From contig NW_026889772.1 in assembly GCF_033153115.1 (NCBI RefSeq), positions 6,262,001 to 6,326,000 of the forward strand: a DNA stretch of 64,000 bases, in the 5' to 3' direction. The translations under genes were made by a program, and so were the position numbers. Under the pieces are notes generated by a model. It was not told the DNA's origin and searched no databases. It saw nothing but the letters and a program-made list of their open reading frames with translations. The DNA comes from Saccostrea echinata. Taxonomy: Eukaryota. This document shows positions 23,601-52,516 of this stretch, in pieces. Position 1 is the first letter of the stretch. Every line of letters starts with the position of its first letter.

Positions 23601-26600
23601 AACTATATCTGATATAGAATGACACCCTATAATAACTATATCTGATATAGAATGACACCCTATAATAACTATATCTGATATAGATTGACACCCTATAATA
23701 ACTATATCTGATATAGAATGTCACCCTATAATAACTATATCTGATATAGATTGACACCCTATAATAACTATATCTGATATAGAATGACACCCTATAATAA
23801 CTATATCTGATATAGAATGACACCCTATAATAACTATATCTGATATAGAATGACACCCTATAATAACTATATCTGATATAGATTGTCACCCTGTAATAAC
23901 TATATCTGATATAGAATGTCACCCTATAATAACTATATCTGATAAAGAATGACACCCTATAATAACTATATCTGATATAGAATGTCACCCTATAATAACT
24001 ATATCTGATATAGATTGTCACCCTGTAATAACTATCTCTGATATAGAATGTCACCCTATAATAACTATATCTGATATAGAATGACACCCTGTAATAACTA
24101 TATCTGATATAGAATGACACCCTATAATAACTATATCTGATATAGATTGTCACCCTGTAATAACTATATCTGATATAGAATGACACCCTGTAATAACTAT
24201 ATCTGATAAAGAATGTCACCCTATAATAACTATATCTGATATAGATTGTCACCCTGTAATAACTATATCTGATATAGAATGACACCCTATAATAACTATA
24301 TCTGATATAGATTGTCACCCTGTAATAACTATCTCTGATATAGAATGTCACCCTATAATAACTATATCTGATAAAGAATGACACCCTATAATAACTATAT
24401 CTGATATAGAATGTCACCCTATAATAACTATATCTGATATAGATTGTCACCCTGTAATAACTATATCTGATATAGAATGTCACCCTATAATAACTATATC
24501 TGATAAAGAATGACACCCTATAATAACTATATCTGATATAGAATGTCACCCTATAATATCTATATCTGATATAGATTGTCACCCTGTAATAACTATATCT
24601 GATATAGAATGTCACCCTATAATAACTATATCTGATATAGAATGACACCCTGTAATAACTATATCTGATATAGAATGACACCCTATAATAACTATATCTG
24701 ATATAGATTGTCACCCTATAATAACTATATCTGATATAGAATGACACCCTGTAATAACTATATCTGATATAGAATGACACCCTATAATAACTATATCTGA
24801 TATAGAATGTCACCCTATAATAACTATATCTGATATAGATTGTCACCCTGTAATAACTATATCTGATATAGAATGACACCCTGTAATAACTATATCTGAT
24901 ATAGAATGACACCCTGTAATAACTATATCTGATATAGAATGACACCCTGTAATAACTATCTCTGATATAGAATGACACCCTATAATAACTATATCTGATA
25001 TAGAATGACACCCTGTAATAACTATCTCTGATATAGAATGACACCCTATAATAACTATATCTGATATAGATTGTCACCCTGTAATAACTATATCTGATAT
25101 AGAATGTCACCCTGTAATAACTATATCTGATATAGAATGACACCCTGTAATAACTATATCTGATATAGATTGTCACCCTGTAATAACTATCTCTGATATA
25201 GAATGTCACCCTATGATAACTATATCTGATATAGAATGACACCCTGTAATAACTATATCTGATATAGAATGACACCCTATAATAACTATATCTGATATAG
25301 ATTGTCACCCTGTAATAACTATATCTGATATAGAATGACACCCTGTAATAACTATATCTGATAAAGAATGTCACCCTATAATAACTATATCTGATATAGA
25401 TTGTCACCCTGTAATAACTATATCTGATATAGAATGACACCCTATAATAACTATATCTGATATAGAATGACACCCTATAATAACTATATCTGATATAGAT
25501 TGTCATCCTGTAATAACTATCTCTGATATAGAATGACACCCTATAATAACTATATCTGATATAGATTGTCACCCTGTAATAACTATATCTGATATAGAAT
25601 GACACCCTGTAATAACTATATCTGATAAAGAATGTCACCCTATAATAACTATATCTGATATAGAATGACACCCTATAATAACTATATCTGATATAGATTG
25701 TCACCCTGTAATAACTATCTCTGATATAGAATGTCACCCTATAATAACTATATCTGATATAGAATGACACCCTAATAACTATATCTGATATAGAATGACA
25801 CCCTATAATAACTATATCTGATATAGAATGTCACCCTATAATAACTATATCTGATATAGATTGTCACCCTGTAATAACTATCTCTGATATAGAATGTCAC
25901 CCTATAATAACTATATCTGATATAGAATGACACCCTATAATAACTATATCTGATATAGAATGACACCCTATAATAACTATATCTGATATAGATTGTCACC
26001 CTGTAATAACTATCTCTGATATAGAATGTCACCCTATAATAACTATATCTGATAAAGAATGACACCCTGATAACTATGATATAGAATGTAACCTTATAAT
26101 AACTATATCTGATAAAGAATGTCACCTTATTAACAATATATATGATATAGCGTATCACTATAATAATTATACCTGTTAAAAAGGAAATCATTAACATTTT
26201 GTATTAGCAACAGACTGTAGTCCATGTATATAAGACTCTAGATGTTTGAAATGTTCACCTACTTGTTTACTGAAAGTAATTACATCTCCAGTAAAAAGAA
26301 ATGACATCCTCAGTAGAGAGACTTGTGTACGTATAGAATGAAAAAGGTGAAGATAACAAACAGTGATCGATCTCAAAAAATCTATAAATAATACAATTCT
26401 GTGAAGAGGGCATACAACATGGACCCCTGGAAATTCCAGAGGTGGGATCAGGTGCCTAGGAGGAGTAATCATCCCCTATTGACAACCGCCATGATCCCAA
26501 AATATTGATCAGGTAGACGGAACATTCCGTAGTTGAATTCAGTATAAAAACAAAGGCCTGACAATAGAAATATCTTTTACATTGAAGAGTTTTTAATGCA

Positions 26601-29143: not shown

Positions 29144-30333
29144 TTAGCTCTGATAAAGCCTAGCTTCACTATACATGTAATTGTTGTATATGTTGTAATT
29201 GTGGGTGATTCTTGTTGCTGATTGGCCAGCCTCACTGTAAGTGTCCGTGGTCTCAGTATTAAATCCTTCTTCCTCCTCGCTATCTTCCTGGGGGTCCGAG
29301 TTAGAAGAGGACCCCGTGTCACTATTCCCTGAAAAGTCAGAAGATTCAGAGTGCTCTCGTGCCCTGTCCATAGTCCTTAAACCCAAACATGAACTTAGCA
29401 TAGGCATGGACAGCAAACTCTGACGAACCCCTTCTCGAACTTTTTCACGAATTTCTTGGTCCATATTTTTGCGTATTTTTTCGTTTTCCCTCCTGAGCTT
29501 TTCCACTTCTTCCTTCAGGTAACTCATTTCTTCAGCTTTCTCATCAAGTTCACCGTTTTTAGCTTTGACTAATTTGGCACATAAGGCTTTGGCATCTTTG
29601 ATTTCTTTTTCCTTTTTGTCACAGTAATCTTTAACAATATCCTGGAAATGTCGGGTTTCACAGCCAGTAAAAGTGTCCCTACAGTCCTCAATTGTTTTCA
29701 TGAAGACGTTCATTCCTTCCACTAGTTTTTGGTGTCCTTTTGGATATTGCTGCTTGTGACATGTACCATAGAGAACAGCGTATCCCCTCTTAAACAGAAT
29801 TTCACTGATTGGGTGAAGTTGATTACAATTACTGTTCTTTATTTTGTTTTCTTCCTGCTCTTGCCTCGAGCGATAATATCGCACTTTCTTATTTAGTTTT
29901 TTAACAATAAAAATGTTTCGTGTCTCTAACAAGAGGGCATCTGTCATAACCTGAAGTGGCTGTTCTCGGTGTTGTAAGATCTGTATGAGCTTCTTGATCT
30001 TTTGTGAGGATGCCCCATGAATCTGAAAAAGAAGTTACCTCATCAATTTCAAAACTGGCATGCATAATTGACAATTTTACAAAAACCATGAGTAGAAAAT
30101 ATTTTTTTCAAAAAGTTTATTTTTAATTAATTCAATCAATTTAGCCTAAGTAGCAATAACTAATAATTTATGCCAAGGGAAAGATTTCAAATACTTACTG
30201 ACAAGTCATGTTTTTCAGTTTTGTTGATCTTATTATGTTGCAGTAAGTGCCTAAGAATGCGATCTGTTATAACCATGTGGCTCTGCAAATCATTCCTCAA
30301 GTTATGTAATGCCTGTTTCTCTGCAGAATCCAT
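29144..30333 (-). CDS. Cluster gene A: CARD-like + coiled-coil protein with acidic Ser-rich linker and C-terminal HNYNIYNN motif (~337 aa; exons 30199-30333, 29144-30022)
   Basis: Exon 1 is 45 codons (MDSAEKQALHNLRNDLQSHMVITDRILRHLLQHNKINKTEKHDLS) ending at a GTAAGT donor. The ttttcag acceptor continues in frame IHGASSQKIKKLIQILQHREQPLQVMTDALLL into the 267-aa ORF. Clear paralogue of gene B. Confidence 0.85.
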
Positions 30334-35109: not shown

Positions 35110-36249
35110 CTAATTTTGATAAATTTTTGTGTCACTGTACATATGGTTGTTGTAGATGTTGTAGTTATGGACAATTTTTGATCCTTTTTGAGTCGTGGAA
35201 GTTGTCATTTTATTTGATGCAGGAACATCACTGTCAGACTCACAATCAGACTCAGAGTCCGAAAGAGAATGTTCCTGAGGCTCGGGGCGTTTTACAGGGG
35301 AACGCTGCCGTAATTTCCTGTCCAAAATGTCTTCCTCGGTTTCGACATAAGGAACTGGATCTGTGGGAGACAGACGGGGAAGCATAAGAAGGCGATCTAC
35401 ATTCTCCTGTACTTTGGTTTTGATTTCTATTCCCATTTTCTTCCGCATGGATTCATTCTCAACTTTCAGCTTCATAAGTTCATCTTGTAAGTCTTTGATG
35501 TTCTTCTGTTTTTCTTCCAGGTCACTGTTTTTGCTTTTCACAAGTTTGGCACACACCAGTTTTGCATTTTCAATTTCCTGGTGCTTCTTTTCTTTGTACT
35601 CGGCAATAATTTCTTGAAAACTTTGTCTCTCGCTGGAAGGCTCCAAACTCTGTCGACATTTAGTGATATCGCCAACAAATTTGTTAATGTCTTCCACGAG
35701 AGCTTGGTGGCTTGTCCCTGCTGTAACTTTTCTGGATTCTCCATATATTGTTAAATATCCACGTGTGTAAAGAATATCTGCCACATCATCTAACTGTCCA
35801 AAATAAGAGGATGTCTGGTTTTCCTGAGCTTGGAGGCGTTTACGGCAGAACCGAACTTTCTTCCTCAGTTTCTGAACAATGTAGTCATTTTTCACATCAA
35901 GAAGAAGTGTCTCGGTTAGAGTTTTCAAAGGCTCCTTTCGATTTTTCATGATTTGCAATATTCTTTTTACTCTTTGGCAGTTGGCACCCAGTCTCTGAAA
36001 AAAATCAAGGTCAAGAATTAGAAATTTCTTTTCAAATATTAAACATAGTTATTGATTGAATGTTAAAAGAAAAAAAGGAACTGTAAGATTTTGTTGGCAA
36101 ACAAAGATACATACTGAGAGTTCATATTTTTCAGCCTTTGTGATTTTTTGGTTCTGTAGGAAGTGAACGAGCATCTTGTCTGTGATTACTGCACAATTCT
36201 GTAGTTCCTCTTTAACATTGTGTAGAGCTTGGCGTTCTGCTGGATCCAT
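35110..36249 (-). CDS. Cluster gene B: CARD-like + coiled-coil protein with C-terminal HNYNIYNN motif (~339 aa; exons 36115-36249, 35110-35994)
   Basis: Exon 1 is 45 codons (MDPAERQALHNVKEELQNCAVITDKMLVHFLQNQKITKAEKYELS) with a GTATGT donor. The acceptor continues RLGANCQRVKRILQIMKNRKEPLKTLTETLLL. Colinear with gene A (e.g. AKLVCAKLVKSKN vs AKALCAKLVKAKN). Confidence 0.85.
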
Positions 36250-38327
36250 TTTCTAGTTTCTTGAGAAAGTTCCTGTTTTGGATAAAAAAAAAAATTGATT
36301 TTCTTGGTCTTCTTTTACCAAAAATCACACCTTTCCTTTTCTCCTGTGACATTTAAATGATCAAACAAGCTAGAGACACACTAATTTTGGAGTCGCATGA
36401 CGTAAATCGGGTTAAAGTTGGCAGGAAATCAGTATTTTAGGAGCATGCTTATCACTACTTAAACTTGTAAGATAAATTAAAAATTCAGAGAATGATAGGG
36501 CAGTATATTGATACAGTTCTTAAAAAGTGACAGTTAAGAATTCCAGGTGAATTTTGATTTGCTTTCACAGAAACCAGATTTTTTTTGTTGATTGATATTT
36601 AATATTTAAAGAATAGTTTCAAATTAAAATTGAAAAAAAATATTGTGTTGCTCTTTATAAAAATGATTTAATAAATACATGTAGTTATAAATTGGTATTT
36701 TGTTCTCATGAATTTTTTTTAGCAGGATCATGTACTGAAGACAACTGTCACTAAGCACTATTTTTATCATACAGGACCTTTGTCTAAAAGACTTTTCAAC
36801 ACTGCAAAATTAATCGAATATAATTAGGGTCATGAAAAATAAGTATATGATAAAAGATAAGGAGGACCCTATGTACTTACCCCGAAATCTTAGATGGTCA
36901 AGACTGCGAGTGCCGCCCGTCCAATCTTTGTGCCGATAGCTGGGATTTCCCAAGCTCATGTGAACATTACATTAGAACTGTGTCAGTATTTCATTTACTT
37001 TATGACGTCAATGACTACCTTGGATTTAAATGACCAAGAATTAAAAGCCTTATGTTGAATGTCCAACCTAGGGATATTTAAATTCTTCTCGTGTTATTAC
37101 CTTTATTTTGGTGATTGGACGCAGTTCAACTCTTCTGTTGGAGTACTGTCAATAAATTTCTCCTACATTTTAAAGATGTGTATTGGGGTATTGACACTAA
37201 TATTGTACCCTTTTTGGCAGCCATCTGTCCTTTAATTATCACTTGGACCCCCTCATTCTATGTATTGAGGGAGATTAAGACTTTCTGCTGGGTAAACAAA
37301 GATCACTTGAAGTAGTCTTATATTGGGAAGTAGTCCTAAATTTTCCTTTGGAGCGGCTATTTGTAACTTATTTATTTAGCAATCTTTGGTAAATCTGCTG
37401 AGGGTTACAATGAAGTTTTACCTTTAGTTAGAAAGAGAAGCATTATTAAAATAAAATTATAGAAATTTCTTTTAAGCGTAAGGAAATATAAACTTAAGGA
37501 TAATGAATATGTTGATTTAATAATTTTCCTATAAAAGAACCATTTTTATATATGTATGATAATACTTCATGGTTATGGTACATATTTATTTTGGTATATT
37601 TAATCAGAGTATTGTGATAATGAAATGGTTAAGTAATCATTGAAGGTTAAGAGTCATGTATAACTTAAGTTGATTTCATTGATTAAAAAATAAAACAACA
37701 CACAAAAACTTTCAGAAGTTATTAATAGTAGGAGATGATGTAGTTTCCGAAAATTGGTTACTGTAACGCAACTGATGGTAATGTAGCTTGTGATTATATC
37801 CAACTCGGCTTAAACCTCAGACAAGTCACAAAATTATGTGGATCCTGTGCTATTCGCAACACATGTGTAGGATTTTGAGATCTTTATAGATCAATAAGAA
37901 CAACACTGTGCTTTTGTAGAATGAATTGTATTATGGAAATTTACATCAACATAACATCATGGTAAAACAAGAAAGAGAAGAGAAGTGCGTGCTGCGCATT
38001 CTCTTGCCATGTATGTTGACAGCCCAATATAGTAAGGCTTCTATTAAGCATCCATTAGGCTTCTATTAGGCACCCAAATAATAGGGCCTCCTACTACATA
38101 ACATAATTAGGCCATCATTAGGTGTCAGGCACCTAGTTATAGGGCCTCCTACCACATAACACTAGACCTCTAAGACATCCAATATTATTAGGATGCCATT
38201 AGGCTAACAGTATAGCTAGTGATAAACAACAACAATAAAATTACTATAAGTATAAAAGTTAACTACTCAAATCTATAACTCAAATAGAAAACTGTATATT
38301 ATGCAATAAAAAACAGTACAGTTACAA

Positions 38328-39457
38328 TTAATACAGAACACTGTCAGCAAGGCCAGGGAAGTCCAGTGTGTTCTGATTCTCATAGTGTGGCTTTTCTGAT
38401 TGGTCGGATTCTGATGTCGAATCAGAATCTAGGTCCATGGCATTGGCACCGCCCATTTGAAAATGTCCATGATTATGAATGTTGATGGTCACACTGGGTT
38501 TAGAGGAGGGTCTAGTATCCACAGGATTCAATCGAAGCAGCCTTTCTTTGACAATTCTGTCTACAGTTTCTCGAATTATTTTGTCTTTTTCTTCTCGTTC
38601 TCGCTCTAGCTCACTTTCAAGTTCTTCCACTTTTGTTGTCAGTTCATCATTTTCTACTTGAAGACTGTCAATCCTTTTCTTCCACACAGTTCTTTCCAAT
38701 CGAAGATCATCAGCAATGGCCTGTGTTTTCTTCTGGAGGTATTTACTTTGCAGATCTTTTAATGGAACATCTGAATTTTCATCCATGGGATCCATTGCCA
38801 TTCTGCAGTATTTGAGGGCTTTCACAATGTCATTGCCATCACAGGTTTGCTTGTTTGTCTCTTCTGAACAATTCCCTTTATTATCACCATGAACCAGTGG
38901 AGCCACAGAATTGTAGAAGCTCTCAAACACCACAGAGGGTTTCGGATATTTTTTGGTCTCCTTGAATGGTTTTCCATCCATGACGAGATCTGTTTCTTTT
39001 AGTTCTCGGAGTCTGTGTTGCTGTTTGTGATGTCGAACCATTTTTTGCATTTTATCCACACAGTACTGGTTGATGTTCCTTTCAAGCATTAAAGCTTCTG
39101 TAAATGCACTGAAACCTTTTTCTTTTTTGCGCATTATTTCTGCTAATTGGGTGTTTCTCTTTGAACTCTGTCTTATTCTCTGAAAGAACAAGAATTCATG
39201 ATTGCAAAAAAATCATTGTAGCACAAATGCAGGTACATTTTTTGGAGCAAGATGGCAGCAGATTTTTCACAAAGTATAATTATTTTTAAGCAGACATTTG
39301 AAATGTTTTTGAGTCAGTTTACCATGAGACACTTTCGGTCCCTGTGGGAGATCATGTCTGTACTTTCTAGTCGGCGAAGAACAGCATCAGTCACTAGAAG
39401 GTTATTGCTGATGTCTTTCCGACAAGTTTCTAAAGCATACAATTCACTGGTGTCCAT
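38328..39457 (-). CDS. Cluster gene C: CARD-like + coiled-coil + RHIM-like protein (~328 aa; exons 39323-39457, 38328-39179)
   Basis: Exon 1 is absent from the ORF track: 45 codons MDTSELYALETCRKDISNNLLVTDAVLRRLESTDMISHRDRKCLM with a GTAAAC donor. The ttctttcag acceptor continues RIRQSSKRNTQLAEIMRKKEKGFSAFTEALML. Heptad-rich segment, then tail VTINIHNHGHFQMGGANAM. Confidence 0.85.
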
Positions 39458-41024
39458 GTTTGGCTTTGAAAATAGAATTCAGATAAAAATTAAATAATTT
39501 CAGGTGCATTAGGAAAAATGAGTATATTTGATTTGCTTTTGAAATAATACTTACAGGTTTAGCCTGGTCGTATCATGAAATTCTGATCTGTAGGTGATAC
39601 TTTCCTTTTAATTTTGTTTCTTTGAATAAAAATATTTAATGAATCAATGACTTAAAAGAAAGAGGACTGGAAATTTGAGCTAGCAAAGATATTTTGTCTT
39701 TTCTTTAAGGGTGATCATATGTGACAGTCACTAGAACTTTACTGGTCAGTAAATGTGAAATACTTGGAGTAGGTTAGGTCCACTGAATAGAATTCTGAAC
39801 AAAGAACAATACAAACAGCATAATTCTGAAATCCTACCAGTTTCTTTTGTGAAAAAGCCTCAGTTCACAAGTCTGTATACCATTTCATACACTCAGTTAA
39901 CAAAGTTAGTGGATGGGGTAATACATGTGTACTAGCTGGCTTCATCTGTTCTGTTTGCTTATGTATTTTAGTCATACATGATCTTTCTCTACAGCTATTC
40001 AATTTTTGTTGACAATTTTTAAAAAAATATTTTTAAAGTTAGATTCTAGGTTTATTTTAGAAATTAAGGGAAAAAATAATGTGTATTATGTCAATGAAAT
40101 TTCTAATGGAGATAATATCTATTATCTCTAAAACTTGTGATATTTACAAACTTCAGTGAATCGATGTTAACATTGTATACCATTCAGACCTGTGCACAGA
40201 TTACTTATTACTGATCTGTCAAAGTTGTTTGTTTTGATATTTTTTGCAGGGTTAAAGCCTTTAGATATAGATAGAATTCCTGTAAAATCCCTAACTTTGC
40301 TTTGAAGAAACATTAGCTTACATTTGGCAAGGAAGTTGCTTCTGACCAAGAAATGGGTCCTAACAGACCAACATCATTTGAACATGCTAGGTCACATGGT
40401 TTATAAATGTAACATTCTCATGAGGGCTATAGTTTTATAGTGTAAGATGAATAAGAGCCCAAACTTGGCACAAAGGTTGAACATGGCTAAGGATGTGTCC
40501 TGACTATGAAGTATAACTCTTTGGACAATGTCACAAAATTGTATGATGTGTAATATAATGATGTTTCTTACATATCAGTAATTTATTATCATTTTTCTCG
40601 ATACTTATCTCTGTATTTTGTAATTGGATAATCAGCATAAAATTTAAAAATTGTGCTTAGTTTGCAGCAGTTTTGATTGCTTCATAAAAGGCTGTCCCAT
40701 TCAGAGATCCGGAAATTTTCTATTAGGCATGCATTTTATTAAATTTTTACTTTTAAATATCAGAATTCTTTAACCATTTTGAAATTCAGGGACAAAATCA
40801 ATGGAAATATTGTACATACTTATTTCTAGCTTTTGATTTTTTGACAGCTACCTAATTTTTAATGTCTGAAGTTGAACCAAAAGTAAAGAAATTAGAGTTA
40901 TGTCCCTCTACATGTACTGCCATAAAACCCACCACAAAAAAAAGCAAAACAAAACAATGTATAAAAACTAGATAGATATGTTTATATTCTATTTGTAAGA
41001 GACTCAGATTAATGCAACTTTAAT

Positions 41025-42252
41025 ATGTCCACCGCTTTTCAAGCGGAGAGGGGTATATATTGATGTATATAGTGATGGGTGTCTCTATGACATCCTTTTA
41101 TCCATACGGCTGTAACACTTGGGGATACCCATCTCTTATCTGCAACGTACTCCTCTTATACAGAGTTCAACACTAACTTTTCTACCCATAAGTACAGCTG
41201 GACTAGTGCTTCTTTACTTTTACTTAAGCCTGCAGGTGTTTTTATTAGACCGTCAAAAAAATGCATCATACATGTTTTTGTAACTACTGATTTTGAATAT
41301 AATATCACAAAGTGCTTCTTACACTATTCGTTGAAGTGAATTGTTCTTTTCCATGAATTTGTTGAAATCAGGAAGTATGATCATGTTCAATCTTGTTCCT
41401 TTATGAATTACACCCAAGATGTCCGACATCTGTCTGTGTCAACATGTACTAACGATCACTAAAGCATTTTACTTCATATTGATCTATACAATTAAGCACT
41501 CAATTGACTTGGAATTGGGCAACTACCCACCAAAAGCTAAAAATACATTTTGGGTTTGCCATTAAAAATTGTCGAAATCAGACATCTGTAATTATTTTTA
41601 TTGTTTACCTGAGAAGTTTTAATTGGTCCGTTTGGACTGATTAGCCACAGATTTTATTGGTCCAAATGAAAATGTTTTAGTAAGTCCGAGACTAAAAGAC
41701 TAATGTTATGCCCAACCCTGCTATACCATGAAAGAAAATGTAATGAGATTTTCATTTTAGAATCTTTATTACATAGTTCCACTGTGCACCTTCTATTTTA
41801 CGATTCAATCAGAGAGATATTTGGGGTTTCCCATAGCAAAATATGGACACTGCAATTTTTTCTATAACATTGGGGTACCAATCTCTTATCCACAATTCCT
41901 CCTATACCTGAATGAAATATAATGAATTTTTATTACACAGTGCCATTGTACATTGTATATTACATTTCAATTAGACAGATATTTGAGTTTCCCATAACTA
42001 AACCTGGACACTGCCAACCATTCTATAATGGGGGTACCCATCTGTTATCTGCATCTCCTCCTTTACCACTGAAAAAATTTTAAGAAGACTTTCACAGAAT
42101 CTTTAGTACATTGTGTCATTGTGGACCTATTTTATGTTCTGATTGGACAGATATTTTGGGTTTCCCTTAGCCAAAAAATGGACTTTGCCATTATACTCCT
42201 GTGGTGGCGGGGGTATCATTTTGTGAGCTCAGTGCTCACAGTACCTCTAGTT
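41025..42252 (+). mobile_element. Degenerate Helentron/DINE-like element with internal ~155-bp repeats
   Basis: Repeated GGGG[A/G]TACC[C/A]ATCT[C/G]TTATC...CTCCT and GACAGATATTT..GTTTCCC blocks. The 3' end has GGGGGTATC and a hairpin GTGAGC...GCTCAC followed by CTAGTTTTT. Confidence 0.5.
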
Positions 42253-42573
42253 TTTATTGAATGTGTACATGATGTCTTTTTTTAGGATTCATCAATCACT
42301 TTGGCTGTTTCTTCATCTCCTATATATTTTATCCAACATGCAAAAGATTTCATCAGAACTCTTTCAGTATTTAAATTGAGATCTGTATCTAGTACCTGTT
42401 TTGACTGCAAACCTGTCTTCTTTTTGTTTATCATATGTACAGCAACCAATTTATACATAGTTCCATAGCAACACAGCAGGAAGTTAAAAATAAAACTATT
42501 GAAAAATAATTAAAGATTTTCATATATTTTGGTTGGCAAAAGAAAAAAAAAATTTGAATTTTAATCATTAATT

Positions 42574-43534
42574 TTAAGCAATTTTTTGTGTAAAAGATTT
42601 TCTTAACACACTTTGCCTTGTCCTTGCAACAGTTTGTCTTAGGATATCATTTTCCATCTCCAGTTCTTTATTCTTTTGTTCGTACTTTTTTAACTGTTCC
42701 CTGATGACACAAGTTCTTCTCTTATAGTCTGATTTCAAATCTACCATAGCTTTCTCTACTTCTTCTAATTCCCTCATCCACATAACAAACTCTGCATTTT
42801 TAGACAGAATGATTTTGACCATCTCTGGAAATGATTTAGCTTGGCCAAAGGTGTCCTGTAGCTGCTGGTGTGCTGAAGTTGTTGTGCTTATTGCTTCTTT
42901 GGATTTATGCAAGTGAAAGTCTATAGAATTATTGTTTACAAAGTATTCACCAAAAGCAAACAGGTAGAGATTGCTGAGTTCTTGTTGAAGCTTAAGAAGC
43001 ATCCTGTGTCTTCTCTCCTCCACTTTCTGTTTGTGAATAAATTCCACTTGATCCACCTCATCTTTCAGTTGCTTGGCAAGATCTGCAGTGCGTTTGTCAG
43101 CCTGGAGTTTGTGGATAAGGAATTTCAGTGCTCCAGGCTTTCTTGCTATCACTTGGAAGAGGAAGTTTTCTGTCCTCTGTGACATTGTGCTTATATCCTG
43201 CACAAAAAATGCATGTTGAATTATAATAGATTAAAATGAAGAATGAAATAACCAAGTATTGAATTGAATTTCCTCATGAATAAAAGTTATTTAAATTGTC
43301 TTGCTTTTTTTAATCTCAAAATAACAATTTTCATGATATTTAAATGTGAATGATTCTGTTTAAAAAATATAAATGATTATTTACACTACAGATACAAACC
43401 GTAATTTTGTTGAAGTCTCTCCCCTCCATGACCCCATGGTTTACAAACCACCCCAGGAACTGGGTTGTGGGGCGAAGTCTCTCCACCAGGGTTGTCCGAC
43501 AATTCTCTAGGGCCCTTCTCTCACAGTAAGCCAT
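42574..43534 (-). CDS. Cluster gene D: CARD-like + coiled-coil protein without low-complexity tail (~252 aa; exons 43400-43534, 42574-43197)
   Basis: Exon 1 is 45 codons (MAYCERRALENCRTTLVERLRPTTQFLGWFVNHGVMEGRDFNKIT) with a GTTTGT donor. Exon 2 begins DISTMSQRTENFLFQVIARKPGALKFLIHKLQADKRTADLAKQL. This is the most canonical CARD-like pattern of the four. Confidence 0.85.
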
Positions 43535-44236: not shown

Positions 44237-45811
44237 TCAATAATCGTCTCCATGTAGAGATTCAGAATTTGCAAATGACATGGTTGATTCTGGGCGATAG
44301 ACAAATTCAGTCTCTTCTTGATGTTCAAAGGTCACACTTGGTCCTTGATTTTGGTTGGTCAGCTGTTGTCTGTGGGATCCTGTAGAAATATGCAGACGAG
44401 AACTAGACCGACTTCTGCCACTTTGTACAGACTCTTTGTGAGGTATTGAAGAATTAGAAGTTCTCTCAGGAAATATATGATAGAGATGCAGAGTATTTAT
44501 TGGGCCATGGAAGTGATTGTGATGTTTATTGTCAGAACTTTCATTCTGTTGGTCAGCTCTAGACAAGTTTGTGATGGTTTTGGAACCAGGATTGTTTGAT
44601 TTTGGCACTGTATTTATGGGATTTTCTGTTTGGCAGTGAGTACTAGTACATTCTGCTTTCAGGTTAGCACTGCATGCTTTATCAACTGAAGTTTTATGAG
44701 ACTTTCGCCTGGCCTTTGACATATTGTAGTTTAATTTTTCAGTTTCTTTCAATTTTTCCTTTAATTCATGATACAATTTGTGGAGCTTTCTGCTTTCATT
44801 ATCTCTATGGGCTACCTTTTGCTTCTCATCCTCGAGTAATTTCAGTATCTTTGTCTTTTCTGAAGCATTAAGTTCTTGTTTGTCATATTGTTCCTGCAGT
44901 TTTCTCTCCCATTGTTGATTGCACATTATGAGACCTTTCTCTATTTCTATGACTTGTCTCCTGCACTCATCCTTAATCTTCTCTTTGTCTTCCTCATATT
45001 TTTCTATCTTCATCTCCAGTTTCTGGATTTGATTTTTCTGCCTGATGCTTATTTCTCTGTATTGTTCATGCAGCTCATCTTTATCTTTGTTACTGGTTAT
45101 CCTTTGGTTTTCTGCAACACTGTCCACAAGGTCATGAATTTGCTCTTTGTGGTCCATCTTTGACAAGATGTTTTCAGCTCTTTTGAGTCCTAGATTTTCA
45201 GATTCTATAATACTTATCACGGCTTGTCTAAATTTTCTTTCTCTGAGCTTGAACTCCTCTAATAACATCTTACAGTGGACAAGTGTACCTACACCTTTCA
45301 GTTTTGTTTTTGGTAGGAAGGCCTGCAGTTCGTCTGAAAAAATAAGCTCCCTGCAGCGATTCTGACACTTTTCAATTGATTTTACCTCTTCTCTCAGCTT
45401 CTTGGTGAAAGGAATCGATTCTGGGATATCCGAGAAATCAAAAGACTTGCTAAGTTGAGCAAGGGCTTGCAGAATCTTTGAGGATTCATCCAAGACTTTT
45501 TCAGTGGGTAAAAGTTCACCTGCATTTGCATGACAGAAGGAATAAATAATATGAGCAGCTTTTGTTAGCTGATTAACATCTGTTGAGCAGTCCTCCTCAG
45601 TTTGTGTCCAGCATTCTGTGTACACTTTTTTGGGAGAAATAATTTTGGTAGCTTTCTGACGATTTCTTTGTTTTTGGTTTGCACGTTTAGTTGACACCCC
45701 TGTTAATTCTTTTCCCGTGGTTCTGTTTGTGTTAGGAACAGTTGATTCTTTGGCTGATGGTTTGTATGTGATATTCACAGTTGAGGTTTCTTTACCTGTA
45801 GTTTTATTCAT
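44237..45811 (-). CDS. Cluster gene E: 524-aa coiled-coil protein with His/Asn-rich motif and C-terminal SFANS motif
   Basis: 1.57-kb open frame in AT-rich DNA. Basic Thr-rich N-terminus with short internal repeats (NKTTGKE/NRTTGKE), long K/E/Q heptad region, HHNHFHGPINTLHL, ending TMSFANSESLHGDDY. Probable upstream exon ~46027-46116 with a GTAAGT donor. Confidence 0.8.
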   Translation of the reverse strand: MNKTTGKETSTVNITYKPSAKESTVPNTNRTTGKELTGVSTKRANQKQRNRQKATKIISPKKVYTECWTQTEEDCSTDVNQLTKAAHIIYSFCHANAGELLPTEKVLDESSKILQALAQLSKSFDFSDIPESIPFTKKLREEVKSIEKCQNRCRELIFSDELQAFLPKTKLKGVGTLVHCKMLLEEFKLRERKFRQAVISIIESENLGLKRAENILSKMDHKEQIHDLVDSVAENQRITSNKDKDELHEQYREISIRQKNQIQKLEMKIEKYEEDKEKIKDECRRQVIEIEKGLIMCNQQWERKLQEQYDKQELNASEKTKILKLLEDEKQKVAHRDNESRKLHKLYHELKEKLKETEKLNYNMSKARRKSHKTSVDKACSANLKAECTSTHCQTENPINTVPKSNNPGSKTITNLSRADQQNESSDNKHHNHFHGPINTLHLYHIFPERTSNSSIPHKESVQSGRSRSSSRLHISTGSHRQQLTNQNQGPSVTFEHQEETEFVYRPESTMSFANSESLHGDDY

Positions 45812-48453
45812 ACCTTGAAATTTTAAAAAAGGAAATTAATTTTGATTGCTATAATCAAGAATTATTGACTGCATATTTAAACAACAAATCATCAGTTATA
45901 TATTTTGGTACATTTTATGGCTGATTGGATGAAATAGTTCAAGAAAGTGATAAAAATTGTGGATCAGAATGATGTTTTAGAAAAAAATGTTCTTAATTTC
46001 AGTGATGAAATATAAGCAAAACTTACCTTCAAAGTTGCATATAAATATAAATCTATTAATTTGCACCTCTGGATTGAATTGCTCTGCAGAGTTTCTAGTG
46101 ACATAGTGCAGTGTGCCTGAACAATTAAAACAATGTACAGGACGTACGTCTTAATCTGTTCCATCAATGACTGAGAATCCATTGTCATATATATATTGTT
46201 CGTGACTCATTCAATGCATCTTGAAGTTGCTTTGTAATACCTGAATTTGTTTTGTCAATGTATGGTTCTGCATAGATAAAAAAAGTCTTACTGAAAGAGG
46301 AAAATATTAATACAGTAGTGTTTTAAAAAATTCATCAGTTGTTGGGGGGCTTTATAGAATGAGGTCTTTTCTTAATTGATCTTGTAATAGTTACTACAAA
46401 AAATGTTGGAAAGTTTTCATCTTGATATATTTCTTGCCATATTTTGACCCCAAAATATATATTACCATATCAAAATACCCACATAATGTGGCTAAAATTT
46501 AGCTTTAACATTAATATCTTAATATAGATGTGAAAAGGATGTGTGTTTTAATTTGTTTTGTTTTTTTTTTTATTTTTAATTTATAAATTTAAAGTTGATT
46601 TAAGATATTGAAGACTTTGATTTATTTACTTAGAGGTTATCAAAATGCATTAAATTTTATAAATAAAAAGTGTTTGGAATGTCTAATATGCTTGTACGTC
46701 GTTAGTGTTTCAGATATGAATGTTCAAGATACTAATGTTCAAATATACAATGCTATTGGTTAAATGTACTGGAGGTTAGGAGGTCTGATAGAATACTAAA
46801 ATGTTGCCACATCAACTTGGTCAGACACACTTTCTTTGATTGTATATAATTTTATGTTGTCCTGCTTTGAGTTTGCCTTCTGGGTCATAGTATAAAAAAG
46901 TATAGTTTTGAAAAGGCATTTATTTTTATCTGCAATAAAAAGTGTACTAAAAAGTAATTGATAATTGTAGACTTGATTTTTGAAATACAATGTAGTGGTC
47001 AAATGCTGTTGACTTTCACTTTAAATCTAAAAAAAAAAAAAAAAAAAATTTGCATATATTGATGTCAATCAACTGTTGATTTTATGAGGGAAAAACACAC
47101 TGCAATTTTTTTTCTAAATAAATTAGATACTGTATGTTTCATTATACTTAGAAGTATTATATTCTTTTATTATAAGTCTATTGCACCTATTGTATGGACA
47201 TAGTTTTTAGAGATTATGAAAGCAGCTGAATTCTTTATTTTTCACTGCTGTAAATGGTATAGTGGTGATTCCTTTTTCTAAGCCATTTCTAAATGAACTC
47301 TGTGAAACAAAAGCTAAGTCAGATCTTTAATACTGAGTAATATGCATTCATATTTGGTTATCTAATTATCTAATAATTAAATACTTTTATGATTAGGTAA
47401 AAAGTTGGCACTTAATCTTGTCTTGAAAAAGAACCACTGCATGATTTTAACTATCCTGAGACCTGTTACAGTAGAGATCAATCAGAGATATAATTATAAT
47501 TCTAGATATCCATTATCCTGATACATACTCTGATCCTATATGACTGACAGTTCTTCACCTTAAATTTAAACCTCATATATATATCAGTCTGGGAATAAGA
47601 TCATAAAATAGATTATTTGAAAATTTAATACATGTATTTTTTTTTTTTTTAAAAAAGAAGCAAATTTACCATTGGGGGGAGGGGGGGGGGGATTTAAACA
47701 CAGTCAGAAAACTTTACTAAATTCCTTTCTTAATGCACTAATTTTTTTTTTTTACCCAACATTTTATAATTCTAACTTCTTTTTTTGGAGGGGGGGGGGG
47801 GGGGTTACATTCCTATACCTTAACATGTTGTTAAATCTCTGTATGTCAGGTCACTCTTCTTATTAATAAGGATATAGTGAAAAACAAATTCAATATACAT
47901 ATATATGTATAAACCATGTACAACACATTTGATACTAGATGAATAATAAATAATTTCTGGACATTTTATTTAATGTACATATATTTACAACTAAAGAAGA
48001 GAGAATGACATTTTTCTGTAGGGCATATCCAATGTACCTAACCTATGATAAAGATAGTCTAAATTAAAAATCATTGTACTATGTATATATGTGTACAAAT
48101 GTTTTTAGACAAAAATCAGCATACATTATTAGGGGCCTTGAAAAGATATTAAATGACCCAATATCTGTTTTGCTTAGAAAAATGCACAAAAATGACCAAA
48201 CATATAATTTTAGCTGGTACTTTCTCAAGATTAGTTTTAAAATAGGTGTGTAAGGCTTCATTAGTCACACACTAGCTGGTACTTCACTAATTAGAACTGA
48301 TCTTCAATTACAAGAATACAGGGGAGAATTCAAAACTATGTTGCATATATCTTAAAGAAAGCTGTCTTTGCTTTCAGAAAAAGCAAAGTCTGTTAATGAA
48401 AAGTCTGAGTCTCATTTTTATGGAATTATCTACAAGATGTTTAACTTAATATT

Positions 48454-49335
48454 TCAACACTTTGTGATATCACTTAGTGTTTCACTGCAGTTTGCAAAGC
48501 TGATATCTGTCTGACCACTGTTTTTTCTTCTTATGGTTGGAACAGGAGAAGTTCCACTATTAGCACAGCTTATTGTCGATATGGCACTGTCAACTCTACA
48601 AGGTTTTTTGAGAAACATTGTTTGTTCTCTGATTTTTTCCCCAGAAAAGGCAGATACAGGTCTGCTTATTTTTGAATGTACTAGATTAGCTTCTTCACTT
48701 CCCAGAAAATCTTTTGGAGATGAAAAAACCCAAGTTTGTACTCTCTCTAACTGCCTGTTTTGTTCCCACTTTCTTTTGGCCTCTTCAAAACGTTCGTTCA
48801 CATCTTTTAGTTGGCACTCAGAATCCTGGAGTTTTGTCTGAAGATCCTGATTAATCTTTGTAAGGTGTTTTATTTTATCCTCAAACTCAATTATCTGCAT
48901 TTGCAGATTGTTTTCTGCATCCTGTAATTTGCGGTGGTAAAAATCAGACATCATTTTCTGCTGTTCAAATCCGGATTCTTTATCTTTTAAATCCATTTGT
49001 AACTGCATGATCATTTTAGAAATTAGATCTGCTAACTTTGCAAGGCATGTCACACCTTGTGCATTAGGTACAAGTTTTTGAGTCTCAATGATAAAATGCT
49101 GCAGTTGGCCAAGGGTTACTTTCACATCAGCAATGGAGTCATTACCAGAAGAATGAGAACCTTGTACAAGTTCATGGATTTGTCTCATCAAATCATCCTG
49201 CTCCTGTGAGCATTTACTGGACTGCTGTTCCTTAGCTCTTCTTGCAATAGTTGTTTTCATAAAAATAGGCTGGCGAGTCTTTCTTTTCTCTGCGTGTCCT
49301 GGCTTCGAATTACTTCGTTTTGGTGGCTCAGGCAT
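48454..49335 (-). CDS. Cluster gene F: 293-aa coiled-coil protein with two S[FC]AN[SC] motifs
   Basis: Single-exon ORF with a basic head, QIHELVQG helix and coiled coil. Tail ISTISCANSGTS...TDISFANCS is shared with the neighbouring genes. Confidence 0.8.
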   Translation of the reverse strand: MPEPPKRSNSKPGHAEKRKTRQPIFMKTTIARRAKEQQSSKCSQEQDDLMRQIHELVQGSHSSGNDSIADVKVTLGQLQHFIIETQKLVPNAQGVTCLAKLADLISKMIMQLQMDLKDKESGFEQQKMMSDFYHRKLQDAENNLQMQIIEFEDKIKHLTKINQDLQTKLQDSECQLKDVNERFEEAKRKWEQNRQLERVQTWVFSSPKDFLGSEEANLVHSKISRPVSAFSGEKIREQTMFLKKPCRVDSAISTISCANSGTSPVPTIRRKNSGQTDISFANCSETLSDITKC

Positions 49336-49848
49336 ATTTTGTTTTTTTTATACAGAATGTCCATGAATATTCTTGAAGCAAAAGTGGACAATCATTAATT
49401 TAGCTTTTTTGGATAACTTTACCTCTGAAGAAGCTTTAGTATCTGAAGTTTCTGTATCACAGTCCACCAAACTTGATTAGTGGTTTGTGGTAAACCCAAT
49501 TGCTTTGTGTGGTGTTTCAATTCATGCACAACTCCAATATCTATTCACTGGACCTTTAACAGTGTTAAATAGATAAAACCAATGTTCCCACATTAATTAA
49601 TTATTCATCACTGATGCCTTTTAAGATAGCTATCTTGTTTTAAACAGGTGTTTCCAAAAGAAAATCAGCTGTGTATTGCATTGCAGTTCCATAAGTAGGA
49701 GGAGTGATTGTCAACAATTTCTTTTTCAATGTCAACAGATGAATTATTTTCAGGGTTTAAAAAACTGTAAAGACCTCTCTTTGATCATCAATTTTCAAAG
49801 ATGTTTTTTTTATGACATAGTAAAGAGAGTAAATGATATATTTTTACA

Positions 49849-50880
49849 TTAATCTTCAGAAATTGAACTGTTTGCAAAACTTATTTCAGAACATTCTGTA
49901 TTTGGAGATAATTGTCTTCCACAGTCTCTGACAAAATTATATTCATTCCTGCAAGATGCACATTTTCCACAGTCATCTTTACCTCCATTTAAATCGGAAA
50001 ACTCAGGATGGTTCTCAAGCCTCTCTTTCAGCATCTCATTTTCTTGATTTAACTTTTTATTTTCTAACATCAGTTCTATGTGTTTTGATCTGACTTCATT
50101 TCTGTATGTTGCCATTGCTTGCAATTCATTATTAAGTTTGTTATTTTTGCTTGTCAATTGTATATTTTCCTTATATAACATCTGAAGGCTTATCGGACTT
50201 GTAGAACATTCCTCCTTTAGTTTACTTTTCTCTCTTTCTAACAGCCCATTGCTTGCATTCAGATTTTCAATTTCATCTTTTAGTTTTTTATTTTCTGCTA
50301 AGTAAAATGTGATGGCATTCCTATGGCTTCTGTTTTCTTGGTCATTACATGTTTCCAGATTTTTAATGTGATGTCTTAATTCCTCATTGCAGTCTTTTAA
50401 CTTCTCTCTTTCTTCTTGTATTTCTGTCAGTTTTCTTTGCATAATTTCAAATTTTGTCATCAATTCTAATTTGCTTTTTCCTCTCATTGATGTAAACTCA
50501 GAAACCATAAAATCTACTTTGTCAAAGAAACCCTCCCCTGTGTTCTTTACCCCAGGAATTTCCTGATCCAGTCTGGTTTTAAGTTCCTGGCCACGATCTA
50601 TTGCATGTCCCATCTTATTTAGTAGAGTATCATTTGACTTTCCCAGCAGAAGGTCATGTAGTTGGCTGCTGAATGTTTTATATACAGGACCATAATGTTC
50701 TGTACTTCCATTTTCCTGATTTCTACGTCTGTGAGGGAGTTTCATATTGACACTTTTGTGTCCATTAGATTCTCTGCCATGAGGCTTTCCTGCTTTACCT
50801 CTGTTTGCTTTTCCTTTTGGAGAATTTTGGATTTTTGACTTTTGTATCTTGTTACTGGTTGTATTTTTTGTGGCTTCCAT
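49849..50880 (-). CDS. Cluster gene G: ~343-aa coiled-coil protein with Cys cluster and C-terminal SFANS motif
   Basis: ORF is open from 50922, with the likely start at MEATK (50880). Basic head, QLHDLLLG helix, long coiled coil, CGKCASC...C, ending SEISFANSSISED. Confidence 0.8.
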   Translation of the reverse strand: MEATKNTTSNKIQKSKIQNSPKGKANRGKAGKPHGRESNGHKSVNMKLPHRRRNQENGSTEHYGPVYKTFSSQLHDLLLGKSNDTLLNKMGHAIDRGQELKTRLDQEIPGVKNTGEGFFDKVDFMVSEFTSMRGKSKLELMTKFEIMQRKLTEIQEEREKLKDCNEELRHHIKNLETCNDQENRSHRNAITFYLAENKKLKDEIENLNASNGLLEREKSKLKEECSTSPISLQMLYKENIQLTSKNNKLNNELQAMATYRNEVRSKHIELMLENKKLNQENEMLKERLENHPEFSDLNGGKDDCGKCASCRNEYNFVRDCGRQLSPNTECSEISFANSSISED

Positions 50881-51532
50881 TTTACAGTAAAAGACCAATC
50901 TGATGGTTGAAGGAATAAACATTGTATTCTTAAGTAACTACATAGTTAAGGTTTCAAGGAAAAAAACATTGAAAAGGAAAAAGAAGAAAAATTAGGCAAT
51001 TATTTGATGGGAAAAAGTATACATACCTGATGTAGGTATTCTCCGTTTTGAAGGGATAGTTAAGAATATTTTTTTACAATGCACATTTTCTGTTCCAAAT
51101 ACTGGCGTTATGTCATTTTGAGAGCTGACAAAGTAATAAGTTTCATTTTCTAGTCATTTTGTTAATTAAGGCTTTTCATTTTTACCAAATAATTGCTGGA
51201 AATGAAATCTTGTTGATCTACATTGTTTTTTTAATTGCTTTGGAAAAATTATTTAGTCTGAGCTTATATAAAGGTGTACATAATTTGTATTGTAAAGAAA
51301 GGGATATTGTGAAATGCCTTTGAAGAAGAAATTCATGTATATATCTCCTTTGTCAGTAATTAAAAATGTATATTTAGAGGAGTTTCTTATTTATCTGCTA
51401 TAATTAAGGTGGGAAGTTTACTGGACACTTTTGTGACCTAAAATGGTAATACAAGATTAGAAGTGCAATGACCATCATGATACCATCATCATTTAAGATT
51501 AATTGAATGTTCAAAATTTAATTCTAAAATGT

Positions 51533-52516
51533 TCAAATAATTTTGAGTTTATCTATGCATTGTTTACATAGAAATACTTGTGTAGTGTTGAACATTTTTG
51601 AACACAGTAAACAAGATGTCCTGAGTTCTGAATGAGTGCTGTTAGCAAAGCTTAACTCTGTCATGTCACTGATCCCTCTGTCTAAATCCCTGAAGCTTGG
51701 TACTGTAGAAATTCCACTATTGGCAAAACTTAAAGGAGAAACACATGTATCCGAGTCGCTTCTTATAGATTTCCCTGAAGTTTCTCTAGAAAAGTTTCCT
51801 GTAGAAGAGGATAAGGACTCAGAAATTGAGGATGAAGATTTTGGTCTTTGATTTTGTTTGGATTCTTTTTGGTTCTTTGACCCGATTTCACATATTTTCA
51901 TTGAAGATATAAATTTCTGCAATTTTTCCTGATACTTTTCCTCTTCCCTTCTAGTTAACTCCTGTAACTTACCATTCTCTTCTGTAAGTGCCTGATTTTC
52001 CATTTTCAGAAGGTTTAACTCTTTAACCAATTCTTGTATTTTATCATCTTTTTCGAGAATCTGAATTTCATGTTTGTTTTGAAGTTCTTTGATTTGTTTT
52101 CCTTTGTATTCCATTAATCTCTCATTTGCTCTACAGTTGGCAACACTCTTTTCAATATCACCTTTTTTCTTCTGATATTCTTTCAAGAGAAGCCCTGTTA
52201 TGCCTGCAAAATAATTCTGATCAGCTAGGTCTTTTGCCCATGGCACCTCTTTCAGTATCTCTGCTTGTAACTGTTCAAGACTTGTTATTGTATTTTGACA
52301 GTTGAGGAAAATATTGTCACTCATGGCAGTTGAACCTAAAAGAAACTGGCACAGTTGATCCACTTTCTGTTTTTGGTGGTCTATCTGTGGTTTAGTGGTC
52401 AAACCTTTGATTTTTCTTGGAGACACAGGATTTCGTGATAGTAGCGGAGTTGGTTTAGATCTCCCCATAGGAATGCTCTGCACCCTTAACCCACTTCTGT
52501 TTGTACGCCCTGCCAT
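51533..52516 (-). CDS. Cluster gene H: 327-aa coiled-coil protein with two SFANS motifs and a terminal C4 zinc-finger-like motif
   Basis: Single-exon ORF with QLCQFLLG helix and coiled coil. Tail LSFANSGIS...TELSFANS followed by CLLC-x11-CKQC. Confidence 0.8.
   Translation of the reverse strand: MAGRTNRSGLRVQSIPMGRSKPTPLLSRNPVSPRKIKGLTTKPQIDHQKQKVDQLCQFLLGSTAMSDNIFLNCQNTITSLEQLQAEILKEVPWAKDLADQNYFAGITGLLLKEYQKKKGDIEKSVANCRANERLMEYKGKQIKELQNKHEIQILEKDDKIQELVKELNLLKMENQALTEENGKLQELTRREEEKYQEKLQKFISSMKICEIGSKNQKESKQNQRPKSSSSISESLSSSTGNFSRETSGKSIRSDSDTCVSPLSFANSGISTVPSFRDLDRGISDMTELSFANSTHSELRTSCLLCSKMFNTTQVFLCKQCIDKLKII

Follow-up and report, generated by a model that had tools for sequence, protein, structure and literature searches.

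Can a single protein combine a CARD, a coiled coil and a RHIM-type amyloid motif? This question is raised by a locus of the oyster Saccostrea echinata, where an initial annotation placed a RHIM-like motif in the tail of a CARD-coiled-coil protein encoded on the minus strand (gene C) and proposed that such an adaptor could bridge CARD filaments to amyloid signalling. Innate immunity and cell death of animals rely on two main polymer-based signalling devices, RHIM amyloids and CARD filaments, which in mammals occur on different proteins; we know of no characterised protein that couples the two. Here we follow up this annotation for the window, i.e., the whole stretch of 64,000 nucleotides that was analysed. 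The observation of the motif is confirmed and its interpretation as part of a CARD-coiled-coil-RHIM adaptor is partly supported. The reading with the best support, to which we assign a probability of roughly 0.5, is that a CARD/coiled-coil adaptor carries a divergent cross-beta motif of the RHIM type.

Gene structure, expression and predicted fold of gene C

Gene C has two coding exons separated by a phase-0 intron (Table 1), and the translation of the terminal one is 100% identical to RefSeq LOC133191548. The first coding exon has the make-up of an internal exon, with an acceptor (ttttcaaag/CCAAAC) at 39463 and a donor (ATG/gtaaac) after 39323. A contig of the public run X1 ends exactly at these two borders, with unaligned letters at both ends, a second X1 contig of 849 nt spans 38295-39143, and in a contig of run X4 the intron of the paralogue that lies upstream is missing. 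These contigs behave like RNA, and gene C is thus spliced and expressed. The spliced product was examined through the database proteins P0001 (S. echinata, 482 aa), P0022 (Ostrea edulis, 328 aa) and P0031 (S. cucullata, 554 aa).

Table 1. Positions of the features of gene C and its surroundings, numbered from the first letter of the window
Feature	Positions	Strand	Remarks
Gene D, second exon	42574-43203	-	Upstream paralogue; C-terminal half of CARD and coiled coil; RefSeq models
Small joining exon of the RefSeq LOC133191548 model	42007-42066	-	Links gene D to gene C; inside high-copy repeat 41759-42255
Gene C, exon 1 (first coding exon)	39323-39463	-	ATG at 39457; 45 codons, MDTSELYALETCRKDISNNLLVTDAVLRRLESTDMISHRDRKCLM; N-terminal half of CARD
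Open frame, 287 codons	38328-39191	-	Contains the terminal exon of gene C
Gene C, exon 2 (terminal coding exon)	38328-39179	-	283 codons and TAA stop; C-terminal half of CARD, helical linker, coiled coil, disordered tail
CARD, C-terminal half	39030-39179	-	About residues 46-95 of 328 aa; predicted (AlphaFold2, Foldseek, VIA-align)
Coiled coil	38532-38762	-	Residues 185-261; predicted single long helix (AlphaFold2, pLDDT 90-97), heptad-like charged sequence
Motif SVTINIHNHGHFQMGGANAMDL	38430-38495	-	Residues 272-293; last exon of gene C
RHIM-like 18-mer TINIHNHGHFQMGGANAM	38436-38489	-	Proposed strands TINIH, FQM and NAM; I, I, F, M at the tetrad-equivalent positions; conserved N, Q, G and N-x-M
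Acidic Ser/Asp/Glu-rich stretch DLDSDSTSESDQSEK	38391-38435	-	Directly after the motif; 80% invariant in three species
C-terminal end FPGLADSVLY	38331-38360	-	Conserved second short motif; GLADSVL invariant

The X1 contig over the first coding exon carries 16 letters beyond the acceptor at 39463 and this exon must, therefore, be spliced to something upstream. One candidate for this partner is the upstream paralogue, gene D, in which case a longer transcript, beginning in gene D and with gene C as its 3' half, would encode a CARD-CC-CARD-CC-RHIM-like protein. RefSeq does fuse the two genes in frame in its models of S. echinata (482 aa) and S. cucullata (554 aa), but not in O. edulis, where the orthologue P0022, with 328 aa, has as its first residue the Met that opens the 45-codon first exon of gene C and of the paralogues. 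The S. echinata join is itself doubtful because the joining exon sits within a high-copy repeat, the upstream letters of the X1 contig may represent just a 5' UTR exon, and the contig joints listed include none from gene D to gene C. We regard the fusion as rather doubtful; with or without it, the reading of the tail of gene C is unchanged.

The description of gene C as a CARD-coiled-coil protein is borne out at the level of predicted structure. From an alignment of 14 family members, and with P0022 as the target, AlphaFold2 predicted an N-terminal domain of six helices (residues 3-100, pLDDT 83-93), the first of which is split (3-11 and 13-19), i.e., a six-helix death fold with a broken helix 1 that lies nearest to solved CARDs. 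The best Foldseek match of this domain is the CARD of Apaf-1 (TM 0.86), VIA-align gave Z scores of 14.1 and 14.0 for the CARDs of caspase-9 and Apaf-1, respectively (rmsd 1.6-1.7 A over 92-98 residues), and all of the best 50 VIA-align rows are CARDs. Because the predicted fold matches CARDs and is accompanied by the long helix at residues 185-261, the description holds. The Pfam CARD model (PF00619, gathering threshold 23.9 bits) gave no match for gene C or its orthologues; orthologues of paralogue A scored below this threshold (P0029, 21.5 bits; P0026, 15.8 bits), and P0029, from Magallana gigas, bears the UniProt name 'CARD domain-containing protein'. For the coiled-coil region Pfam returned sub-threshold coiled-coil families only. 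Residues 265-328 of P0022 are predicted to be disordered (pLDDT about 32), and the acidic Ser/Asp/Glu-rich stretch adjoins the motif, in agreement with the disordered S/D/E-rich flanks initially described. Gene C is thus modelled as a protein of 328 residues in which a helical linker joins a predicted CARD to a long coiled coil, followed by a disordered tail.

Conservation of the tail within an oyster family

A phmmer search against 1.84 billion representatives returned oyster proteins only, and the family is detectable only in Ostreidae; a profile search brought in further oyster members. Four paralogues lie in tandem in the window. The lineage of gene C itself is represented in S. echinata, S. 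cucullata and O. edulis by one orthologous group. Its sister lineage consists of P0004 (S. echinata) and its orthologue P0027, P0008 (Crassostrea virginica) and P0007, and the lineage of genes A and B comprises P0026, P0028, P0029 and P0030.

The gene C proteins of the three species align without gaps over 328 residues, with 89% invariant positions in the CARD, 61% in the linker and 73% in the coiled coil. Within the tail, the block around the motif (residues 269-293) is 92% invariant versus 8% for a twelve-residue tail segment downstream (309-320), and SSKPSVTINIHNHGHFQMGG is the second-longest invariant run of the whole protein. The sole change within the 18-mer is an A to T substitution in S. 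cucullata, at a predicted loop position. The comparison of the motif with its flanks in orthologues, which the initial annotation had put forward as a check, thus found the motif conserved far above these flanks, and the combination of predicted disorder with confined conservation that is looked for in a RHIM is present in gene C. A caspase cleavage site in MDLD/S was considered and rejected, as it is not conserved in Ostrea (MEMD/P).

This conservation could, however, also have a cause unrelated to amyloid. The acidic stretch (80%) and the last eight residues (88%) are likewise largely invariant in the three oyster species, so that the tail holds several linear motifs, and paralogues A and B possess a quite different tail motif (HNYNIYNNxMYS) at another position relative to the acidic stretch, from which it follows that the tails are evolutionarily plastic. 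Both observations would fit a conserved non-amyloid short linear motif, such as a peptide by which the tail docks onto a folded partner, or an element rich in His (H-x-H-x-H) that senses metal or pH; the likeness of this motif to RHIMs would be convergence in N/H/Q/G-rich disorder. This is the main rival to the RHIM-type reading and is quite possible, though less probable than that reading. The evidence that bears on it further is the nature of the likeness itself.

Likeness of the motif to RHIMs

Minus-strand translation of 38495-38430 gives exactly the peptide that had been reported. The RIPK3 string with which it had been compared is confirmed by PDB chains (7DAC, PLVNIYNCSGVQVGDNNYLTMQQ), the RIPK1 numbering agrees with a mutagenesis preprint (10.64898/2026.02.19.706818), and the ungapped register match between gene C and these RHIMs is real.

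Profile-based recognition failed. The Pfam RHIM model (PF12721, gathering threshold 20 bits), suggested in the initial annotation as a check, gave no match at E<=10 whether the query was a separate exon, the tail, a 37-aa peptide or one of the whole proteins P0001 and P0022, with an exon of the oyster's own RHIM-DD gene as positive control (25.1 bits), and a genome-wide scan with this model lists other loci, not that of gene C. A leave-one-out profile of four canonical RHIMs assigned gene C only about 6 bits, a score equalled or exceeded by chance ORFs in 187,000 background residues. Searching the PDB by phmmer with the tail or a 30-mer of gene C gave nothing relevant, and a search of the ESM Atlas gave no usable match. 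The canonical core (I/V)-Q-(I/V/L/C)-G is replaced by F-Q-M-G in gene C, in which Q and G are present and both hydrophobic residues fall outside the canonical set, and His takes the place of the Gly that precedes the core in the RIPKs. As judged from sequence, gene C does not qualify as a formal member of the RHIM family. That neither the curated nor the leave-one-out profile recognises the motif, and that three alternating histidines are unusual among vertebrate RHIMs, both speak for a non-amyloid linear motif.

The oyster's canonical RHIMs put these histidines in another light. The genome-wide Pfam scan found one convincing exon, on contig C62 (G000:C62:4204892-4204948), which reads KKTSIHIHNSKNVQVGNNNVMVVNQ and has an acidic Ser-rich stretch and death-domain exons after it; the best PDB matches of this RHIM are the RIPK3 RHIM fibrils. 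As no kinase motifs were found within about 32 kb upstream, an assignment of this gene as RIPK1 was rejected and we refer to it as a RHIM-DD adaptor. An Imd-like gene on contig C54 (G000:C54:13709095), which the Pfam scan did not list, reads IETDARPG and NIQIGDQNFMVV. Since the oyster's canonical RHIM also reads I-H-I-H-N, His at these places belongs to a local RHIM dialect, and this argues against the non-amyloid rival. Gene C shares with these canonical adaptors of the same genome the dialect I-H-I-H-N ... Q-x-G-x-x-N-x-M and the S/D/E-rich stretch after the motif; it differs from them in its core, which is VQVG or IQIG in the canonical genes, of which the C62 gene passes Pfam, and in its setting, a CARD and coiled coil instead of the death domain encoded by the C62 gene.

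Aligned without gaps with the Pfam-positive oyster RHIM SIHIHNSKNVQVGNNNVM, the 18-mer of gene C is identical at 8 of 18 positions and attains a BLOSUM62 score of 42. The probability of this score is 1.5e-7 to 3.4e-7 per position with the composition of the protein or of the tail, and 1.9e-5 with that of the motif itself; such a value is significant when a single tail is the target, but not in a blind proteome-wide search, in which 2-5 such matches are expected. A profile built from the oyster RHIM and the gene C peptide matched, in the whole PDB, RIPK1 and RIPK3 RHIM fibril chains only, with a best E of 0.0073 versus 0.46 for the oyster RHIM alone. Shuffling of the gene C peptide lowered the scores of this PDB search to about 10 bits, and the real value was reached by no more than 0-1 of 300 shuffles, a control that speaks against the non-amyloid rival. 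Because the two-peptide profile sharpens the detection of RIPK1 and RIPK3 whereas the four-RHIM profile fails, the sequence evidence is mixed.

Deep mutagenesis of RIPK1 and RIPK3 identified an 'aliphatic tetrad' (Y531/V450, I533/I452, I539/V458 and I541/V460) that, together with M547, is essential for nucleation (10.64898/2026.02.19.706818). In the ungapped register gene C carries I, I, F and M at the tetrad positions (i, i+2, i+8 and i+10) and M at the equivalent of RIPK1 M547, positions that are kept in the paralogue lineages, and it also has N at the place of N454, Q at Q459, G at G461 and the N-x-M. Two further paralogue lineages (LQINNVENLQLS and IKIENLGILHLN) show in their tails the skeleton [ILV]-x-[ILV]-x-N-x3-h-[QH]-h-[GSN] with different cores (LQLS and LHLN, with variants LQI(N/I)NVENLQ(L/F)S in the first lineage). 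This skeleton arises in 1-5 of every 10,000 shuffled tails. The paralogues keep exactly what a RHIM needs while the rest varies. The occurrence of the RHIM-critical positions at the same spacing in three paralogue lineages is an argument against a non-amyloid linear motif. Several of the patterns used here were, however, devised after the sequences had been seen.

Could the resemblance be due to chance, the motif having no specific function? Besides the matches expected in a blind search, the genome-wide count of the DNA pattern [IV][HY]N-x3-h-Q-[IVM]-G is near that of the control (27 versus 21), as chance would predict. Only gene C and the canonical RHIM-DD gene have their match in an open frame of more than 100 aa, although short exons could hide more; one match in a short ORF (L016) scores 19.3 bits. 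Against chance stand a run of twenty residues that does not vary between two oyster subfamilies, in a disordered tail that otherwise evolves fast, the setting of the motif in a CARD adaptor and the recurrence of the skeleton in the paralogues. We consider it very improbable that the resemblance is fortuitous.

Proposed mechanism and comparison with known systems

If the motif is indeed of the RHIM type, gene C would be a cytosolic innate-immune adaptor whose disordered tail carries a divergent RHIM-type motif followed by an acidic Ser-rich stretch. The coiled coil would hold two or more tails side by side, which would lower the barrier to in-register cross-beta stacking. The motif could then form amyloid by self-nucleation or be templated by canonical RHIM adaptors, for which the RHIM-DD (C62) and Imd-like (C54) proteins of the oyster would be the candidate partners. 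The resulting polymer would cluster the CARDs, from which filaments of partner proteins with a CARD might be seeded, unless the signal runs the reverse way; in either direction gene C would bridge CARD filaments and RHIM amyloid. By analogy with the acidic gatekeepers D526/E527 of RIPK1 (10.64898/2026.02.19.706818), we speculate that the acidic Ser-rich flank restrains nucleation, as a gatekeeper or under the control of phosphorylation. Equally speculative is the idea that the three histidines could make the assembly pH- or metal-dependent.

A bolder version of this reading extends it to the whole family. The oyster CARD/coiled-coil family would have expanded, with each paralogue bearing its own cross-beta 'barcode' in the tail (FQMG, LQLS, LHLN, and NIYNNxMYS in A/B), and the barcodes would define insulated, amyloid-templated channels that couple RHIM-type polymers to CARD filaments. 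We consider this unlikely as it stands. Were the RHIM-type reading itself true, a natural protein with both polymers, whose coiled coil clusters the amyloid motif beforehand, would offer a simple system for the study of cross-seeding, and paralogues that keep the RHIM skeleton and vary the core would represent a natural experiment on the specificity of amyloid signalling.

Compared with the RHIMs of RIPK1, RIPK3, ZBP1 and TRIF (PF12721; fibrils 7DAC, 7DA4 and 8IB0), gene C shares an element of about 18 residues in a disordered region that aligns in ungapped register, with hydrophobic residues at i, i+2, i+8 and i+10, N at i+4, Q at i+9, G at i+11, N-x-(M/L) and an acidic flank thereafter. It differs in its F-Q-M-G core and in the His for Gly before this core, and it scores below every profile threshold tested. 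The context differs too: the RHIMs of these four proteins occur with kinase, Z-alpha or TIR domains, the motif of gene C with a CARD and a coiled coil.

The order of an N-terminal CARD followed by a coiled coil is shared with CARD9, CARD10, CARD11 and CARD14, and the CARDs of CARD9 and CARMA1 match that of gene C at Z 10-11. Gene C, in contrast, has about 90 residues of linker between its CARD and the long coiled coil, and the phmmer search, with its oyster proteins only, gave no sequence homology to CARD9 or CARMA1-3. CARD9-type proteins are, to our knowledge, not known to carry a RHIM.

The initial annotation regarded the architecture as uncharacterised, a view that needs to be qualified. 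The literature searched describes no oyster-restricted family of CARD-coiled-coil-RHIM-like adaptors whose cores have diversified. The combination of CARD and RHIM as such is not new, being annotated for the ORF BiIV1_006R (GenBank PQ846775) of a bivalve iridovirus (PMC12452177). This viral protein, compared here by description only, forms a precedent for the architecture in a bivalve setting; it differs from gene C in being viral, in having a caspase-3/9-like protein as best match and in that no coiled coil is reported for it (PMC12452177). Bivalve RIPK1 homologues with a RHIM are also known (PMC12119088), and a 'CgRHIM-containing protein' has been published for Crassostrea gigas, as cited in the mutagenesis preprint (10.64898/2026.02.19.706818). 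Moreover, Kajava et al. (2014; PMC4262963) document diverse RHIM architectures in invertebrates, i.e., amphioxus families, Drosophila IMD and PGRP-LC/LE. Like gene C, these have a divergent consensus, belong to innate-immune adaptors and carry the RHIM where death-fold domains usually sit; the passages of that study considered here mention no CARD-coiled-coil-RHIM protein, and the gene C family is found only in Ostreidae. For oyster biology, the proteins described here would add candidates to the RHIM network that bivalve viruses appear to target, given the iridovirus gene with CARD and RHIM.

The fungal HET-s/NWD2 and bacterial BASS systems offer a more distant parallel. These too feature a short amyloid motif, which for gene C is a candidate one, in the disordered tail of an immune or cell-death protein. 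In both systems the same motif is present on an adjacent NLR partner, whereas for gene C no second genomic copy was found: a search of its own genome with the 37-aa peptide, sensitive to close copies, retrieved only the query itself and one with the two-sequence motif profile only its two inputs. The idea developed for HET-s/NWD2 and BASS, that variants of the motif insulate parallel pathways, may also apply to the gene C family of oysters.

A natural variant of the gene C motif, and canonical and candidate RHIM loci in the oyster genome

A natural variant of the RHIM-like motif in the tail of gene C, HNHGNFQMGG, occurs in P0024, a database protein (Logan) from the Ostrea-like orthologue cluster of P0002, in which the His directly before the core is replaced by Asn. 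With a profile built from four canonical RHIMs, gene C not included, this variant reaches 11.3 bits, which is higher than the ~6 bits of gene C.

Elsewhere in the S. echinata genome, the canonical RHIM exon on contig C62 is followed by an Arg-rich and an acidic Ser-rich stretch and then by two death-domain exons (see table). No kinase motifs were seen within ~32 kb upstream of it. The candidate gene on C54 (L039) resembles one for an Imd-like adaptor, and its apparently canonical RHIM core was not among the matches of the genome-wide Pfam RHIM scan. One of its exons encodes IETDARPG, in which an IAP-binding-like A-R-P-G comes after a caspase-8-type site, and an exon downstream of this encodes NIQIGDQNFMVV. 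The open frame on C9 (L016), which scores 19.3 bits with the four-sequence profile, is possibly a small exon encoding the RHIM of a gene on that contig.

Coordinates and strands of the features discussed
Feature	Location	Strand	Pfam score
Canonical RHIM exon SIHIHNSKNVQVGNNNVM	L001/L005 = G000:C62:4197000-4206999	minus	25.1 bits
Two death-domain exons of the C62 RHIM gene	L005 7390-7265 and 6087-5869	minus	
Imd-like candidate gene	L039 = G000:C54:13707595-13710617	minus	
61-codon open frame LAINVYNQSNIQIGNKWK	L016 = G000:C9:47006848-47009876, match at C9:47008348	plus	
Paralogues A and B, C-terminal motif HNYNIYNN(Y/H)MYS...(L/I)YQ(S/N)	window 29144-29947 and 35110-35958	minus	
Five or six tandem coiled-coil proteins	window 44237-58047	minus	
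RIO-type kinase exons (…VHGDLSEYNLLWYQDKVWVIDVSQAVE…), then acidic tail	window 11298-12190	minus	
High-copy repeat	window 41759-42255		
Open frame of >1,600 codons	window 20899-26197	minus	

Neighbouring genes and repeats

The RIO-type kinase gene is probably an ordinary housekeeping gene adjoining the immune-type cluster. The tandem coiled-coil proteins carry one or two C-terminal copies of [ILVM]-S-[FC]-A-N-[SC] (e.g., ISFANSSISED and VSFANSSHSDE). Hundreds of contigs from four runs, with many rearranged joints, are stacked on the high-copy repeat, and exon 42007-42066, with which the RefSeq model joins gene D to gene C, lies inside it. The very long open frame consists solely of an 11-residue repeat (YIRYSYYRVTF and variants) and is a long tandem DNA repeat rather than an obvious gene.

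Tails of paralogues A and B

The tail motif of A and B, CARD/coiled-coil paralogues of gene C, is kept as NIY(N/T)N-x-(M/I)YS...LYQ(S/N) in orthologues from M. gigas and C. virginica. An acidic stretch precedes it, whereas in gene C such a stretch comes after the motif. Unlike that of RIPK1/3, the A/B motif has no Q-x-G core, but its first half is the same as the first strand of RIPK1/3 (Y/V-x-I-Y-N).
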